Of a stretch of DNA of 64,000 nucleotides, positions 1-35,777 are shown in pieces (position 1 is the stretch's first letter; every line of letters begins with the position of its first letter). The position numbers and the translations under genes are program-made. The notes under the pieces were generated by a model that saw only the letters and a program-made list of their open reading frames with translations, had not been told where the DNA came from and searched no databases. The stretch spans positions 300,957,402 to 301,021,401 of the forward strand of contig NC_085841.1 in NCBI RefSeq assembly GCF_035594765.1, read 5' to 3'. This stretch comes from Anolis carolinensis. Its lineage: Eukaryota.

Positions 1-10
1 ATGAGGAAGA

Positions 11-928
11 TGTAACACCCCTAGGCAGCGTGAACACTGGGAACCAACACAGAGGCCAATAAACAATCTAATATCTTTATTAAAGCAATAAAAGTTTCAA
101 ACAAAAATAAGCAGAATAGATAGTCAAACAGTTGACCTTTTAAAAAAGATCAGAATTAGTCCAAAGAATGAAAGTTTTATGTCCAATATTAGAGTCCAAA
201 GTCCAAAATCCAATAACCGAAACACACTCAAACTTATTGGAAGTTTGAGTGGGGAAAGGAGCAAAGTTCCTCAGGAAAGTACTTGAAATAATAGTCCAAA
301 ACAAGGTTTCAAGGCAAGGCAAGGCTGTTCATGGTGGATCTGAAACGCAGTCCAAACTTGGCAAGGGACGAGCCGCTACGCCCGGTCTACTCGAGAGTAA
401 GCGTGCCAAAAGGCCGCTTAAAAGCTCAGGAACAAAAGACGATGTATTCTTCCGTTAGAAGTCCAGTTGACACCGCAACAGAGATTCTCTGTGCAGAACT
501 TTTATTGAAGTCCAAAAGCTTCCCCCAAGCAGGTGCGTGACTCCCCAAATGTTCCCATGAGAACAAGCTGCTAACAATGAGGCGCCAGATGCCTGCCTCC
601 TCAATTCTTCCCAGGAGAACTGGCTTAGCCACAATCTCCTCGCTCCGCTAATCTTACACTTCTCCTTAAACTTTGTCTTCGAGAGCGATCTGTTTGGAAA
701 GTAGCCCTTCTATCAAATTCTAAACTCTCCAGTGATCCGGGAAGAGCCGGCAACATTTCAAGGGCATTCCTAATTGGCTCTGGCTCTGGCTCTGTAATGT
801 CAACAGGAGACATCTGGAAAGGGATTGAATCTTGCTGATCTTGCTGAGGTGAGAAAAAACCCAAATTCTCTTCATTTTGATCTGCAATGGCTGTTGGATC
901 AGGGGCCAAAGGTACCTGAGACATCACA
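11..928 (-). mobile_element. Solo LTR (Gypsy-like LTR retrotransposon), copy 1, 918 bp
   Basis: Begins TGTAAC (11), ends ATCACA (928); perfect 5-bp TSD GAAGA at 6-10 and 929-933; AATAAA on the minus strand near 76-81; left end homologous to the LTR at 34588. Confidence 0.9.
625..927 (-). CDS. LTR-internal ORF (100 aa, acidic tract then basic LRRSVRL motif); probable Pol/integrase C-terminal extension or U3 accessory ORF
   Basis: Open from LTR base 2 (VMSQVP...) to TAA; C-terminus FDRRATFQTDRSRRQSLRRSVRLAERGDCG aligns without gaps to the ORF at 35191-35502. Confidence 0.65.
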   Translation of the reverse strand: MMSQVPLAPDPTAIADQNEENLGFFSPQQDQQDSIPFQMSPVDITEPEPEPIRNALEMLPALPGSLESLEFDRRATFQTDRSRRQSLRRSVRLAERGDCG

Positions 929-1804
929 GAAGAACACATGAGGAAGAAGAGGCTGCAACAGTTTGCCTTTGTCTCCATCCCATCTCTCTTCTTCTATTCA
1001 ATTAATGCTCTGCAAACTGCATTTCTTTTTGAACTCTTTGCAATTGAAGTAAGTCAAGATGAAGGTGGAATGTGGAAGGAGGAAGTGATAGTGGAACATA
1101 GTAAAAGACACTAAATAGAATGACAGAGGATTAATTAGATAGTTGGAGGTTATGTCATAGGCAGAAGATCCTATAATAGAAAGGAATTCGTTTTCTATCA
1201 TAATGTATCCCTGTCCATTGAAAAATAGCACTCAGCCATAATTTAAAAGGCATTAAAATAAATTAAGCAAAGAAAAACTCACTGTACTCACTGCAATGAA
1301 AACTAAGTATTTAAAACATCACAGTAATAAATATGTGTACTTACTATGTAATATATACTACTTACCACATTACTGATGCACACTGTTCATAGTACAATGT
1401 GATATGCATTGCATACAGTGTACTATATACTAAAGTAGTGAGAGGATTTGATTTCCTTCAGTACCTTCAGGAGAATGTAACTGTAAGGGTCCTCTCGATA
1501 CGAAAACCCACCCGCAACTAAAGCAAGTGGGAGCTCATCTCGGCTCCTCCTCCCTTGTTCGGCATCACAGTTTACTCTTTTTTTTATTAATTCCAGAAAA
1601 CAAAAATAAAACCCTCATTCCCTGAAAACTACTACCACCTAGTTACCTCTCCTCTATTAGAAAGTAAAAACACCTCTAAGGAAGCATTAAAACCAAAGCA
1701 GAAAGGAGATTCAAGTGTGCCAAGAAAAAAAAGAAAGGTTTATAAGGCAGCCCAGGGAGGACAGCTCCAGGAAGTCATCGCTCTTCCTTACCTGGAAGTG
1801 GGCA

Positions 1805-3870: not shown

Positions 3871-4914
3871 CCTATAAGTACAATTGTGCAAGTTTCCAGG
3901 ACTTGGGGGAGTCTACACTTCTAGAGGTCTATTCATATTGGCATATTGTCTCCCCTGACTCAGAGAGAAATGCTGGCATGTAGATGTCCAGGTAGGGCAT
4001 ATATAATAAGAGGCAGACACTGTAGAATGGTCCTAGAGACCCTTTAATAACATAACATCTTTTTCATGTTTAAATAAAGCTAATGGCATGCCTTCTGAAA
4101 GTTCAACACATAACTCCCTGGATGTTTGAAGGGGGCAGAGGAAATGTTTTTAACAGTGGTCTCTTGCCTTTGGAATCCATACCCCAAGAAACTTACCTTC
4201 CTGGTAGAGTTTCTTTCATGTTTTTGTACCGTTCCATCCATTCAGATGGCACAGAATGATACAACCTCCTCCAGAATGAAAGGAGCAGCAAAACGGAAAA
4301 AAGGGGGCAACAGTAGACATTTGGTAGGCAGATTTTTGACACTTGGCTGTAGGCCCTGGCTGTCAGGGCCTATAGCCAAGTGCCGGGTGCTCAATGCTTG
4401 TAGGCCTGGCAGGCAGGGCCTACAGCTGAGCACCAGGCCCACTCAGATGTAGGCCCTGGTGTTTTGCCGCCTACAGCCCAAAAATCTTTGGTTTTTTTGG
4501 ACCTTGGGTGGAAAAGCTCATTTATATAGGCACCCGTGGCATACAGAAATGGAAACGGGGCCATGCAAATGGGACAAATAGAAACGGGTAGTGATTCCAT
4601 ACAATAGCATGAGATTGCTTCGTCATGCCATCATTAGTCTCATCTAGACCAATGTTAATACAAATGGTGTCCCCTGGACTGTTCCCAGTCCTTGATCCAT
4701 TAGTTACCAACACCTGATAAGTTTCCAGAAAAGAAACAATTGTAGTTGATGACATAAATATGGTGACAGTCTCAGGTACTTTGGCGCAGCAGCGGTGGAG
4801 GCGGAGGGGGAAGGGTAACGACCAGTCGCCCACATCAAATAAGAGAAGCATCAGTTTAGGTCAGCCTTCCCAAACCCTCACCTGCAAGGTTTGTTGGATA
4901 GATCTATGTTAGAT

Positions 4915-6230
4915 CTTAGGAAAGAGCTATACAAGGGAGTATGTCTCTGTTAGTTCTCGTGGATCTCTCAGGGCTTTCAATGCCATTTATCATGGTATAC
5001 TTCTGAGTTGTCTCACTGGGATGGGACTGGGAAGCATTGTCTTATATTGGCTCCAGTCCTTCCTGCAGGGTTGCATCCAGAAGGTGGTGCTGGGGGACTC
5101 CTGTTCAAATCCCCGACCATTGACTTGTGGGGTTCCTCAGGGTTCTATTTTGTCTCCCATGCTGTTTAACATATCCATGAAACTGCTGGGAGAGGTCATC
5201 CAGAGTTTTGAGTATGGTACCACCTATATGCAGATGTCACCCAACTCTACTCCTTTCCACCTAATACCAAGGAAGCTGTCCTGACCCTAAAACAATGCCT
5301 ATCATCAGTAATGGACTGGATTAGGAAAAAATGAAACTTAATCCAACAAGACAGAGATCCAGCCTGTGCTGGATGGGGTCACACTTCCTCTGAAGACACA
5401 AGTCTGCAGTTTGGGGGTCCTCCTGGACTCGGCGCAGAACTTGGAGGTCTAAGTGTTGGTGGTGGCTGGCCAGGAGGGTTTTTGCACAATTGAAGCTTGT
5501 GCTACAACTGCACCCGTTCCTTGAGAAGCAAGGTCTGGCCACAGTGGTACATGCTTTACTTACATCCTGTCTGGAATGCTGTAACATGCTCTATGTGGGG
5601 CTGCTTATGAAGAGTGCTCAGAAACTTCAGCTGGTCCAAAGAGCTGCAGCCAGGTTTCTAACTGTGGCTGGCTACAGAGAGCGGACAACACCACTGTTGC
5701 AGCAACTAGACTAGTCTGTTTCTGGGCACAATTCAAAGCACTGGATATGACCATTAAAGCCCTAGACAGGTCCAGTCTATTTGGCTGTCCACATCCCCTT
5801 GAACGAACCTGCCTGGGCCCTGAGATATTCAGGGGAAGCCCTTCTCTCGATCCCATCTCCATCTCAAGCTTGGTTGTTGAGAACGAGAGAGTGGGCCTTC
5901 TCAGTGGCTACCCCTCGACTCTGAAACTCCCTGCCCAGGGAAGCCAGAATGACACCCTTCCTGCTGTCCTTCTGATGGCAGACTACAATCTTTTTATTTA
6001 GGCAGGCTTTTAAAGATGAAGGTTTTAAGACCAATTCAAGGGTGCTGTGTTTATTTAAACTTTGAATATGTTTTAATGGTTTTTAACTGGGATTTTTTTA
6101 AAAATTCTGTTTGTATTTAATGATATTTTAATGTTTGCATAGTATGCTGATACTTTTATGTTAAGCCGCTTTCAGTCTCCTGCAGGAGAGATAAAGCAGG
6201 GTATAAATAAATATAATAGTAATAATAATA
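4915..6230 (+). mobile_element. L2-clade LINE, 5'-truncated, frameshifted RT and 3' UTR
   Basis: RT motifs W..SFL.G..Q.V.LG....P..LTCGVPQGSILSPMLFNI, a YADV-like motif, and ATVVHALLTS.LE.CN.LYVGL..KLQLVQRAAAR; ends GGAGAGATAAAGCAGGGTATAAATAAA plus a (TAA)n tail. Confidence 0.9.
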
Positions 6231-10558: not shown

Positions 10559-10712
10559 CAGGATAGAAATTCATGACTAATAAAGAGTCATCTCGATTGG
10601 GAAGATAACTAGTAGCTCTGAATTCTTTCCTTAATTTTTAAGAGGTGGAAAATTTAGTCAAAAAAACCGACCCCTCCCCCCAACTGCTTCATCTTATCCA
10701 TGGTCAATGTAA
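10559..10712. repeat. Left copy of a ~150-bp direct repeat (long TSD) flanking the RTE LINE
   Basis: CAGGATAGAAATTCATGAC...CCATGGTCAATGTAA recurs at 11691-11841 with about 4 differences. Confidence 0.95.
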
Positions 10713-11690
10713 CTTCTTAAGCGATCCCTCATAGGCCGAGGATGATGGCCTTCCAGTCGTGGGGTCCTGGGGATGTGTCCGTAGATGGCTGAAGAGACCT
10801 ATTCTTGATCTGCATGTTCTCCCGCAGTGAGGACATCGGTTTCCAGGTAGAAGGCAGTCCCGGTCAGGGTTGGCTTGATGTTCCTTCCTCTTGGCACGTT
10901 TCTCCCTTAAGCCCTCCATTCGTGCCTCTTCGAACTCCGCAGCACTGCTGGTCACAGCTGACCTCCAATTAGAGCGCTCAAGGGCCAGGGCTTCCCAGTT
11001 CTCAGTGTCTATGCCACAGTTTTTAAGGTTGGCTTTAAGCCCATCTTTAAATCTCTTTTCCTGCCCACCAACATTACGTTTCCTGTTCTTGAGTTCGGAG
11101 TTGAGCAACTGCTTTGGGAGACAGTGATCGGGCATTCGGACAACGTGGCCAGTCCAGCGGAGTTGATGGCACAGGAGCATCGCTTCAATGCTGGTGGTCT
11201 TTGCTTCCTCAAGCACGCTGACATTTGTCTGCCTGTCTTCCCAAGAGATTTGCAGGATTTTTCTGAGGCAACGCTGATGGAAACACTCCAGGAGTTTGGT
11301 GTGATGTCTGTAGACCGTACACGTTTCACAGGCGTAGAGCAGGGTTGGGAGGACAATGGTTTTATAAACAAGCACCTTGGTATCTGTACGGATGTCCCGG
11401 TCATCAAACACTCTCTGCTTCATTCTGAAAAATGCTGCGCTCACAGAGCTCAGGCGGTGTTGTATTTCAGTGTCAATGTTGACTTTTGTGGAAAGGTGGC
11501 TGCCAAGGTAGCGGAAATGGTTGACATTTTCTAATGTTACACCATTAAGCTGTATTCCTGGCATTGCAGAGGGATTGGCTAGTGCCTTTTGGAAGAGCAC
11601 TTTGGTTTTTTCGATGTTCAATGAGAGGCCGAGCTTCTTGTATGCTTCTGCGAAGGTGTTTAGAGTGGCTTGTAGGTCTTCTTCTGAGTG
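10713..11690 (-). mobile_element. RTE-clade LINE (RTE-1/Expander type), 5'-truncated, reading frame intact
   Basis: Uninterrupted frame HSEEDLQATLNTFAEAY.KLGLSLNIEKTKVL...FRYLGS...PTLLYACE...LRWTGHVVRM...C-terminal CPHC..HLRTH zinc finger; truncated just after the RT YADD motif. Confidence 0.95.
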
Positions 11691-11841
11691 CAGGATAGAA
11701 ATTCATGACTAATAAAGAGTCATCTCGATTGGGAAGATAACTAGTAGCTCTGAATTCTTTCCTTAATTTTTCAGAGGTGGAAAATTTAGTCAAAAAAACG
11801 ACCCCTCTCCCCAACTGCTTCATTATCCATGGTCAATGTAA
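11691..11841. repeat. Right copy of the ~150-bp direct repeat flanking the RTE LINE
   Basis: Matches 10559-10712. Confidence 0.95.
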
Positions 11842-19382: not shown

Positions 19383-19712
19383 CAGGTTGAGTATTCCTTA
19401 TCTGGAATTCTGAAATACTCCAAAATTGCCCAGGTGGGTGACTGAGATAGTGACACCTTTGCTTTCTGATGGTTTAATGTGTATAAACTTTGTATCATAC
19501 ACAGCATTNNNNNNNNNNNNNNNNNNNNNNNNNNNNNNNNNNNNNNNNNNNNNNNNNNNNNNNNNNNNNNNNNNNNNNNNNNNNNNNNNNNNNNNNNNNN
19601 NNNNNNNNNNNNNNNNNNNNNNNNNNNNNNNNNNNNNNNNNNNNNNNNNNNNNNNNNNNNNNNNNNNAGCACCTTTGGTTCTGAGCATTTCAGATAAGGG
19701 ATGCTAAATGTG
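19383..19712. mobile_element. Tigger-like MITE spanning an assembly gap
   Basis: TIR CAGGTTGAGTATTCCTTATC / GATAAGGGATGCTAAATGTG; colinear with 31921-32249. Confidence 0.8.
19509..19667. other. Assembly gap (159 N)
   Basis: Run of N. Confidence 1.
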
Positions 19713-32894: not shown

Positions 32895-33644
32895 TGACAC
32901 ACTCTAGAGCAGGAACCCTCTGATTTGAACAGCACATAGGTTACTAAAATCAGCAAGCAGTTTATTGTAGAATATATGTAACCAAAGCAATAAAAGGTAG
33001 AAAACAGTATAAATGCAAAATCCAAGATAATCCAGAATCTTTAGCAGGAAACCAGGTCCACCAGTACATAGGAAACCATACAGCAAGGCACATGAAAACA
33101 AGAGATCAAAATAGCAGGAACTCACAGGCAAAAAACTGAATCTTGGCAATAGCTTGATACATGAAACATGGAGCGCTTGGAAATGAAACCAGCATGGATT
33201 AAAGATGTTGACTTGACTGAAATATTAGTCTCCCATGAATCAATATAAACCCTTTCCAAAAGCCGAAACTGACAGGAAAGCATTCTTTCTCACTCTCCCA
33301 ATAGATAACGGGTTGCTATCTTTGCTGTAAATGAGCAGAATGCCTGAGATTCTGAAAGTGCTGCCTCTGTTTACTAAAACTCTGCTTTCTGTTCAAGGTT
33401 TCGCTATCCTCTCCCCCAGACCTGGCAAAGCAATTTCAGTGTCATTTTCAGGCTGCTGCTTTGAGAAATTCAGTGAAAGGTCTTTCCCAGCAATATGACC
33501 TTGCTCAGGCTCTTGCTCAGGTCTCTCTTCTGAACTTAACTCTGACTTGAGCCCATCATCAGGCCCAGCAACCCCATTACCTCATCATCATTGCCATCAT
33601 GAGCGTCAGACACAATCACAGGCTGAACAGGCTGACATACAACA
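32895..33644 (-). mobile_element. Solo LTR, older and more divergent relative of copies 1 and 2 (750 bp)
   Basis: TGACAC...ACAACA termini; TSD CCAAG / TCAAG (4 of 5 match); minus-strand AATAAA near 32961-32966; decayed ORF with LNRKQSFSKQRQHFQNLRHSAHLQQR. Confidence 0.8.
33316..33643 (-). pseudogene. Frameshifted remnant of the LTR-internal ORF
   Basis: Starts VVCQPVQP at LTR base 2; acidic tract with at least 2 frameshifts; terminal motif aligns without gaps to the ORFs of the other two LTRs. Confidence 0.65.
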
Positions 33645-34545
33645 TCAAGATTCTTACTCTTACCAACTTATCCCTGTTGTGTTACTGAACCAACATTTCA
33701 AAATGACCATTTAATATAGAAATTATTCTTCTAATAATTAATAACAATTATATTATTCCGGCCAGGTGCATCTTCAGAGTCAGGGCAATTAAAGTGTCAA
33801 ACTGCATTAATTTGTCAGTGTAGATCATTCAGACTTTTAAAGTATTAATAATGTATCCATCTGCTTACCTAGGCACAACACACAAACATAATACAGGTAG
33901 TTTGGCAGGTTGGAGTCTGTCAAAAGATGTGTCTTGAGGCCCAGCCTCAGACATTTTGCTGCCTAAGGTAAAAGATGGCCATGAAATACTATGGATACAT
34001 CAACACTAACCATTTACATTGTGTCGGGTAATTTCCAAGGCCTTAGCAGAGTGCTGGAAATGTCTCCAAGCCCCAATCCAGCTAGGATCTAAGCTTCCTC
34101 TGTGTGGTGTAGGAATTACATTGCAAGAACAACATATATTCCAAACACAGTTGCTCTTTCTTTAAGCAGGAAGACTTTATCTTCAATAGTTGCAAACAGC
34201 TATATACAATCCTCTCTCTCTCTCTCTCACTTCACTTACATCCGCACTGTCATTAGTTCCTTATCACCATCATCACTGAGCCCATGCCAGTCACATGCTT
34301 TTATACTCTCCCCCATCAGCCACTTGCTTGATCATGGTGACACTGCACTTTACTAGGTGACTATGTCTAGGCCTGAGTGACACAGCACTTTATAATGTGG
34401 CTAGGTCTGAATGACTCAGCAATTTACAATTTTAATATGCCAGGTAATTTTACAAATCTTGATACATTGACACAGTGTAATTGGCCCCATGACAGCTTAA
34501 TGTCCTATGGGTTGATCCAACTTTACCAGGATCAAGGGCACTATA

Positions 34546-34587
34546 ATGCTACCTTGCCCTGTGTTATGCTACCTTGCCCTGTGTTAT
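34546..34587. repeat. Perfect 20-bp tandem duplication abutting the LTR
   Basis: ATGCTACCTTGCCCTGTGTT twice. Confidence 0.9.
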
Positions 34588-35503
34588 TGTAACACTCCAA
34601 GGCAGTGTGAGCACTGGAAACCAAACAGAGACCAATAATCATATAATATATTAAAACAGTTATAAATTCAGGAAAGAATAAGTGGAAAGGGTGAGTGAGC
34701 AATAGTCCTTTATGATATGGTATGAATTAGTTCAAAGAGTTGAAGAGAAATGTCCAGTATTATTGTCCAAAGTCCAGAAACCGAAACATGCTCAAAACTG
34801 TTGAAAGTTATTGAGCGGGGAAACACAACAAGGAAGCAAGAGTGAAATAACAAGGTCCAAAGAGCAAGGTCCAAAGAACAAGGTCCAAAGTCACTAGATA
34901 GTCTTTGTCATCAAGGCAGGAATGAGACGGAGTTAAAACCAATCTGGATTCAGGAACAAGGCAAGGAAGTGAATTTACTCCGGTTCAATTGGGAGACGCT
35001 ATTTGGCTTGGCTGCCAGGAAACAGGAGGCTCAGCTTGGTGAAATCAGGGAACTGGAGTCGGTGAAGTGTTCTCAAGGGAGACGCTACGTTGACACCATG
35101 AATTGTTCACAGTGTAAGACACTTTTATGGAACTTGGATGTAATCACAGTGAAAGGAAACCAACTCCCCAAAGATTCCCAAGGGAATCTCCTATCCAGTA
35201 TCCCCTCTAGATGCCAATCGTTTACTCCTGCGAAGTTCCTGTTTCTGTGATCTCTGGCGATACAAAACCTCCCTTCTATTAAAGGATACATTCCCTGGGG
35301 AACTTGGGACATCTGGTTCTACCACGGGAGTAATGTTTTCAGTATCTCTCCCAATTAAGGAAGCATTGGAGCTATCCACAGCTGGGGTCTGTAATTGAAA
35401 GGAGCTCGTAGAAGAACTGGGCAAAAGGTCAGAATAAGCTTCATCCTGGTCGGAGTTCATTTCTAAATCAGGTTTAGAACACAAAGGCGGCTGGGGTATA
35501 ACA
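34588..35503 (-). mobile_element. Solo LTR (Gypsy-like), copy 2, 916 bp
   Basis: TGTAAC...ATAACA; perfect TSD GTTAT at 34583-34587 and 35504-35508; first ~250 bp clearly homologous to 11-300. Confidence 0.9.
35191..35502 (-). CDS. LTR-internal ORF (103 aa, acidic/Ser-rich then LRRSKRL motif)
   Basis: Open from LTR base 2 (VIPQPPLCSKP...) to TAG; homologous to 625-927. Confidence 0.65.
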   Translation of the reverse strand, partial: VIPQPPLCSKPDLEMNSDQDEAYSDLLPSSSTSSFQLQTPAVDSSNASLIGRDTENITPVVEPDVPSSPGNVSFNRREVLYRQRSQKQELRRSKRLASRGDTG

Positions 35504-35777
35504 GTTATGCTAATTCAAGGGAAAGCCCAAGATTTTCTAAGTGTCACCCATCCTTCAGAAGTATATATTAAAGATGTAGAGGAGGTTGTGAAGGGAAGAG
35601 GATATGGAAATTTGACCAGATTAACAACTAACTCTTCTTCACTGGTCATGAGACAGCATCCTCTATGACAACTGAGGGTAACAACCTAGTGTGTGGCAGG
35701 GATGGCTACAAATATGTGGCATAAAACTCTATGCTCCAACATTACACTACTTTTTCTTAGTCTTCAGCATATGCCGC

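Follow-up and report, generated by a model that had tools for sequence, protein, structure and literature searches.

A protein-coding tail in solo long terminal repeats of Anolis carolinensis and its candidate HMGN-like arginine end

Whether the long terminal repeats (LTRs) of a vertebrate retroelement can encode part of a protein, and what such a part might do, is the question raised by a 64,000-nucleotide stretch of Anolis carolinensis DNA (NCBI RefSeq assembly GCF_035594765.1, contig NC_085841.1, positions 300,957,402 to 301,021,401 of the forward strand), hereafter called the window. Two solo LTRs in the window, LTR1 and LTR2, each hold an open reading frame (ORF) of about 100 codons, here called the tail, and an older copy, LTR3, holds its remains (Table 1). 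Comparison of these sequences gives good support to the view that the parent elements translate this region of the LTR. The tail is probably the last ~100 codons of the parent's terminal ORF, most likely pol. It would then prolong integrase at its C-terminus, across the polypurine tract and as far as the U3 region of the 3' LTR. More tentatively, its arginine-rich end may anchor the protein to the acidic patch of the nucleosome, in the manner of HMGN proteins.

Protein-level conservation of the tails

LTR1 and LTR2 are each a single LTR directly flanked by a perfect 5-bp target-site duplication (TSD; TCTTC at 929-933 and 6-10 for LTR1, ATAAC at 35504-35508 and 34583-34587 for LTR2), and therefore solo LTRs. 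Their TG..CA termini with short inverted ends, TSDs and multi-copy occurrence with sharp edges (copy number was examined for LTR1) are those of the solo LTR class. A blastn comparison of the two gave a single 250-bp block of 71% identity at the U5 end, the remainder including the tail region being unalignable. Among the LTRs, conservation at the DNA level comprises the first ~30 bases and the U5 end.

Both alternative frames of LTR1 and LTR2 are full of stops, and an open run as long as the tail occurred in 68 of 20,000 shuffled LTR1 sequences and 88 of 20,000 shuffled LTR2 sequences (0.3-0.4%). The N-terminal part of the tail (~66-69 residues) has 11 acidic and only one or two basic residues and is rich in Pro and Ser, and the C-terminal part (34 residues) has 9-10 basic residues. 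The C-terminal 30 residues of the two tails align without gaps and are identical at 17 of 30 positions, 12 of the 17 through different codons, including synonymous swaps that differ at up to two positions (CGC/AGA, TTA/CTT, AGG/CGC). Over the same 90 bases 49 nucleotides agree, distributed over codon positions 1, 2 and 3 as 16/30, 21/30 and 12/30. The Nei-Gojobori method gave a non-synonymous divergence (dN) of 0.51 and a synonymous divergence (dS) of 3.9 for these 30 codons. The dS is saturated, and the ratio is unfit for quotation, but its direction is clear. When the columns of the alignment were shuffled, which preserves every nucleotide pair and destroys the codon arrangement, none of 100,000 trials attained 17 identities or the observed BLOSUM score. 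With tail 1 as query against all six frames of the window, tblastn recovered tail 2 at E 5e-8 in a region where blastn found no DNA similarity. Protein similarity thus persists where the DNA no longer aligns, so the conservation acts on the protein and not on the DNA.

The best-conserved piece of the tail is L-R-R-S-x-R-L-A-x-R-G-D-x-G-stop. A second conserved peptide lies nearer to the N-terminus and consists of an acidic run followed by LGF[FL] (EENLGFF in LTR1). The LEDGF-binding motif was considered as the identity of this peptide and was not assigned, as the first Phe is absent in comparison with the consensus E-x-E-x-F-x-G-F.

LTR3 extends these observations to a third family. Its TSD is imperfect (CTTGA/CTTGG, 4/5) and its termini are TGT..TCA. 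When a profile of the two tail C-termini was compared with 3472 stop-free six-frame pieces of the window, the best non-self match was a piece of LTR3 (33435..33319, E 0.027), which aligns with residues 60-96 of tail 1 and 72-99 of tail 2. Its stop lies ~330 bases into the LTR, the same place as the tail stops of LTR1 and LTR2. The conserved motif reads L-R-H-S-A-H-L, with His at two Arg positions, a change expected when CGN codons decay at CpG following insertion. The LTR3 frame is open for 35 codons from base 2 and begins VVCQP, where LTR1 begins VMSQVP and LTR2 VIPQPP, and at ~33575-33590 (minus strand) it reads DDEVMGLLG, matching the place of EENLGFF.

The LTR1 family was surveyed in contigs from four public runs of the same organism, placed on window positions 1-1400 at 80% likeness. 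All four runs are contigs, and the one labelled RNA (the label is a guess) behaves like DNA. Between 1,528 and 3,351 contig pieces per run were placed, nearly all of them on LTR1. Summed contig depth was 1e4-1e5 within 11-928 and about 0-100 (mostly ~10-70) in the flank beyond ~990, and loose contig ends with mixed flanks accumulated at position 11. LTR1 therefore belongs to a very high-copy family with the edges that had first been assigned to it. The indels reported within the LTR1 frame were only of 6 bases (at 775, in a Glu-Pro repeat) and 9 bases (at 829), and those reported outside the frame were of single bases (203/204). Nine variant places were listed inside the frame, and none introduces a stop. 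At 655, 731, 852, 894 and other positions nearly all family contigs have G or C and the window copy has A or T, which indicates that the LTR1 of the window has accumulated a few percent of decay since it inserted. Loose ends at 837/838 belong to diverged paralogues, in which the tail frame reads SDEDLGFLPS, SNLGFFPS or LGFFPP, and the Gly of LGF is encoded by three different codons (GGG, GGC and GGT).

The selection seen between the three tail copies is best explained as having acted in the active parent lineages and not at these loci. The intact frames of both solo LTRs require no local selection, because decay of a few percent over 300 bases seldom yields a stop.

Two observations concern the flanks. 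Just outside LTR1, the segment 941-987 has a depth of ~140-500, about ten times that of the single-copy flank, and its minus strand is rich in purines; the target DNA probably carries a further small repeat here. Directly 3' of LTR2, beside ATAAC, the flank at 34545-34587 (minus strand) holds a ~20-base tandem duplication (ATAACACAGGGCAAGGTAGC twice).

The position of the frame within the LTR was read from shared signals. ATAAAAGT is common to LTR1 (506-499) and LTR2 (35129-35122) and is followed ~35-40 bases on by GGTGTCAAC, in otherwise unalignable U3/R sequence. The pair can be read as the TATA box and initiator of a core promoter or, alternatively, as a poly(A) signal and the element that follows it downstream. 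The tail frame ends ~120 bases upstream of ATAAAAGT and far upstream of AATAAA (81-76), and on either reading it therefore lies in U3. This agrees with the initial annotation, which had derived the U3 position from TATA-like sites at ~500 and ~35125 and the poly(A) signal. That annotation had also placed the two LTRs at 11-928 and 34588-35503, in agreement with the TGT..ACA ends and the perfect TSDs, and had read their frames as open from base 2 for 100 and 103 codons and closed by TAA and TAG, as we find them. The gapless match over the last 30 residues, with its 17 identities and 12 differing codons, survived our recount, and the upstream part, described as unalignable, acidic and rich in Pro and Ser, gave no blastn match and has the charge composition reported above. 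Purifying selection, then called apparent, is borne out by dN, dS and the column shuffles, and translation of this LTR region by the parent elements is well supported by protein-level conservation in three LTR families.

Translation by read-in from upstream

The tail frame has the same phase in all three LTRs and is open from LTR base 2 in each. The first in-frame Met lies at codon 2 in LTR1, 15 in LTR2 and 23 in LTR3, so that no start codon is conserved, and the conserved residues V1, Q4 and P at 5/6 precede the first Met of LTR2 and LTR3. The shared phase, the lack of a conserved start and the conservation ahead of the Met together favour read-in from upstream over a start inside the LTR. 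Since U3 is present in the element RNA only at the 3' end, the tail codons would be translatable only from the 3' LTR copy. To reach them, the ribosome would pass through the polypurine tract. A tract made of purines only cannot hold a stop codon in any frame, and reading across it therefore costs nothing. We propose that the terminal ORF of the parent would run through the polypurine tract and stop inside U3 of the 3' LTR. Reverse transcription would then copy U3 to both ends, and each 5' LTR and each solo LTR would carry an unexpressed duplicate of the tail codons; the three tail copies in the window would be such silent leftovers. Continuity with pol, and the identity of the extended protein as integrase, are what we infer from this arrangement.

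One further feature at the start of the LTR bears on the alternatives. A CAG occupies LTR bases 11-13 in all three LTRs (916-918, 35491-35493 and 33632-33634, minus strand), preceded by a short T/C-rich run (TGTCTCAG, ATACCCCAG and TGTATGTCAG, respectively). This triplet encodes the invariant Gln4 of the tail and also resembles a splice acceptor.

It is highly improbable that the frames are non-coding, open by chance and alike because U3 contains a cis-acting element conserved as DNA or RNA. Cis elements are indeed conserved at LTR ends, and in these LTRs DNA-level conservation covers the first ~30 bases and the U5 end, but the tails share residues through codons that differ at up to two positions, a result that no column shuffle reproduced. 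Frames of this length are moreover rare in shuffled LTRs, the other frames contain stops, and the indels of paralogues inside the frame are multiples of three. Between the two options that the initial annotation had left standing, a read-through from an upstream ORF and a stand-alone U3 gene like nef or sag, the phase, the Met positions and the residues ahead of the Met favour the former and disfavour the latter. Such an accessory gene, having a start codon of its own and expressed through a spliced or subgenomic RNA, would suit a frame that lies entirely within U3, the ATG at codon 2 of LTR1 and the acceptor-like CAG; it is quite unlikely given a first Met that is scattered over the three LTRs and preceded by conserved residues in two of them, a phase fixed from base 2 in all three, and an acceptor that would directly follow the polypurine tract, a poor context for splicing. 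The evidence for read-in from upstream would also apply if the tail belonged to a terminal ORF other than integrase, whether a third ORF of env type or a Gag that acquires the LTR codons when pol is spliced out. The invariant CAG would suit the splice acceptor of the latter, and a Gag with such a tail is plausible, since the Gag of foamy viruses binds chromatin through a peptide that engages the acidic patch. We regard this alternative as unlikely, as there is no sign of env or of splicing in the window and the published precedent for LTR-encoded tails is integrase.

Relatives of the tail were sought in several collections. A word-index protein search with each tail (candidates of 55-180 aa) gave no match. 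A HMMER search with the two-tail profile against 1.84 billion representatives, without a length filter, gave no match at E 0.001, which indicates that the library holds no close relative, distant tails falling below significance with ~35 informative residues. A sequence search of the PDB with the same profile at E up to 10 gave no chain, and the ESM Atlas, searched by features, no usable match. In metagenome and viral contigs, an exact-pattern scan for the conserved U5 end gave 0 hits, and back-translated tail patterns gave no confirmed relative. Within the window, 105 stop-free pieces of at least 75 aa were scanned with Pfam for a parent pol, and only a fragment of a reverse transcriptase of the long interspersed nuclear element (LINE) type was recovered. 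The window therefore holds no parent element among the scanned pieces.

The HMGN-like arginine end

The best-conserved piece of the tail contains a core (Table 1) that resembles the HMGN consensus RRSARLSA, the RRSSRLTS of Dsup and the RRSARIAT of yeast Dot5 (PMC13347269). In Dsup and Dot5 the three arginines are essential for binding to the acidic patch of the nucleosome (PMC13347269). The tail cores fit RRSARLSA about as well as the validated Dsup and Dot5 motifs do, and keep all three arginines, the Ser and the Leu. A scan of all six frames of the window found the pattern RRS.R[LIV] in the two tails only, and 0.7-0.8% of composition-preserving shuffles of each C-terminal part contain it. 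AlphaFold2 predicted a confident helix at residues 73-96 (640-711; predicted local distance difference test score, pLDDT, 86-91) and no structure for residues 1-70 (pLDDT 50-62).

It is possible, on the strength of this motif, that the tail end is a nucleosome acidic-patch anchor. The R-R-S-x-R-L core would then attach the integrase complex to target nucleosomes at the H2A-H2B acidic patch, and might also serve as a nuclear import signal. The full reading is that a group of vertebrate LTR elements encodes, inside the LTR, an integrase tail with a mimic of the HMGN anchor, which would dock directly on H2A-H2B without a host bridging factor and has been kept across families with unalignable U3 DNA. 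We give it a probability of about 0.3.

Several points weigh against the proposed integrase tail and its anchor function. The window contains a full-length copy of neither family, and our data tie no integrase or Gypsy domain to these LTRs. The assignment of the LTR1 and LTR2 parents to a Ty3/Gypsy-like superfamily is one that we infer solely from the 5-bp TSDs and the TGT..ACA ends. Within the LTR1 family, the listed in-frame variants (3 synonymous, 6 non-synonymous) lie in or near the disordered part and give no clear signal of constraint. Pfam, run on both tails at E up to 10, matched no family, including HMG14_17 and the Chromo domain. The HMGN likeness is a linear motif of 6-8 residues, which AlphaFold2 places in a helix, whereas an extended conformation is usual for bound acidic-patch anchors. 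Among integrases, an Arg-rich C-terminus is also a classic form of nuclear localisation signal.

This last point leads to a further possible explanation, which shares the architecture proposed here and takes the basic end to be a nuclear localisation signal or a nucleic-acid-binding helix, the HMGN likeness being an Arg-rich coincidence. The 9-10 basic residues among the last 34, the confidently predicted helix and the lack of a match to the HMG14_17 profile are all consistent with it, and nuclear localisation signals are present at the C-termini of the Ty1 and Ty3 integrases. Against it, conservation is highest at precisely the R, R, S, R and L that make up the HMGN core and does not follow basic charge in general, Ser and Leu persist in each of the three LTRs, the LTR3 fossil among them, and shuffling at constant composition seldom yields the pattern. 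In the papers searched, we found no report that joins HMGN-like motifs or the acidic patch with retrotransposon integrases.

Other features of the window and known counterparts

Apart from the LTRs, the window holds a decayed LINE-type fragment (Table 1), around which further stop-free pieces extend over 4114-5998. The longest ORF of the window (305 aa, 10707-11621, minus strand) has one weak C2H2 zinc-finger match below the Pfam cut-off and is flanked by a 154-bp direct repeat of 97% identity (10559-10712 and 11691-11841). A run of N lies at 19509-19667.

Table 1. Coordinates of the LTRs, their tails and other features in the window
Feature	Position	Strand	Remarks
LTR1, solo LTR, 918 bp, TGT..ACA	11..928	minus	very high-copy family; contig edges at 11 and 928
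LTR1 tail frame, 100 codons from LTR base 2 plus TAA stop (627-625)	625..927	minus	
Second conserved peptide EENLGFF (acidic run, then LGF[FL])	853..873	minus	counterparts in paralogue contigs and LTR3
HMGN-like core RRSVRLAE, tail 1 residues 88-95	643..666	minus	inside predicted helix
AATAAAAG, followed ~35 bases later by GGTGTCAAC	499..506	minus	read from the sequence; putative function
LTR2, solo LTR, 916 bp, TGT..ACA	34588..35503	minus	identified by termini and TSD
LTR2 tail frame, 103 codons from LTR base 2 plus TAG stop (35193-35191)	35191..35502	minus	
HMGN-like core RRSKRLAS, tail 2 residues 91-98	35209..35232	minus	
LTR3, older solo LTR, 750 bp	32895..33644	minus	tail broken by stops and two frame changes
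LTR3 fossil of the tail C-terminus	33316..33435	minus	ends ..NLRHSAHLQQR, then stop
Decayed LINE-type reverse transcriptase fragment (Pfam RVT_1, E 5.6e-9; GVPQGSILSPMLFN)	4913-5281	plus	unrelated to the LTRs

Where a retroelement lands depends on the tether between its integrase and chromatin. Known tethers are chromodomains, the plant CR motif, the contacts of yeast elements with Sir4 or Pol III, and the LEDGF or BET bridges of retroviruses. A direct acidic-patch anchor on integrase would, if true, be a further and very simple solution to tethering. For the LTRs themselves, the coding nature of the 5' third bears on the annotation of LTR families and on dating by LTR divergence, and the ORFs in these solo LTRs would be silent duplicates and not host genes.

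The nef gene of human immunodeficiency virus and the sag gene of mouse mammary tumour virus are accessory genes in or overlapping the U3 region of the 3' LTR, with start codons of their own and spliced mRNAs. The anole tail resembles them in being coding sequence within U3 that is carried along by LTR copies. It differs in lacking a conserved start and in being open from LTR base 2. In the gammaretrovirus murine leukaemia virus, the C-terminal tail of integrase binds the ET domain of BET proteins (PMC4027182). There, as proposed here, a short peptide at the unstructured C-terminus of integrase tethers integration to chromatin. The viral tail, however, is coded upstream of the LTR and depends on a host reader as a bridge, whereas the anole motif would touch the nucleosome directly. 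With HMGN, Dsup and Dot5 the tail shares an R-R-S-x-R-[LI]-[AST]-x core with three arginines in an otherwise disordered, charged segment (PMC13347269, PMC12480509). Unlike in these proteins, the anole motif stands at the extreme C-terminus, followed by a conserved RGDxG; it is borne by a mobile element and not by a host chromatin protein, and by profile it falls outside HMG14_17.

For the frame as a whole, the closest likeness is to the CRM chromoviruses (centromeric retrotransposons) of plants, in which the gag-pol frame continues into the 3' LTR. The CR motif of integrase, a putative chromatin-targeting motif that forms a single conserved island in a variable tail, is encoded there (Neumann et al. 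2011, PMC3059260; Weber et al. 2013, PMC3605345). The anole tail shares with CRM group A an LTR-encoded conserved island and would also share an ORF that crosses the polypurine tract into the 3' LTR. It differs in having a vertebrate host, in a tail without likeness to the CR motif or a chromodomain, and in a conserved peptide that is an HMGN-like arginine motif. A coding 5' part of the LTR that serves as the end of pol is thus of a known kind, and the position of the frame is not new in kind. What would be a new variant is a vertebrate element in which a tail of this sort closes with an HMGN-like anchor.
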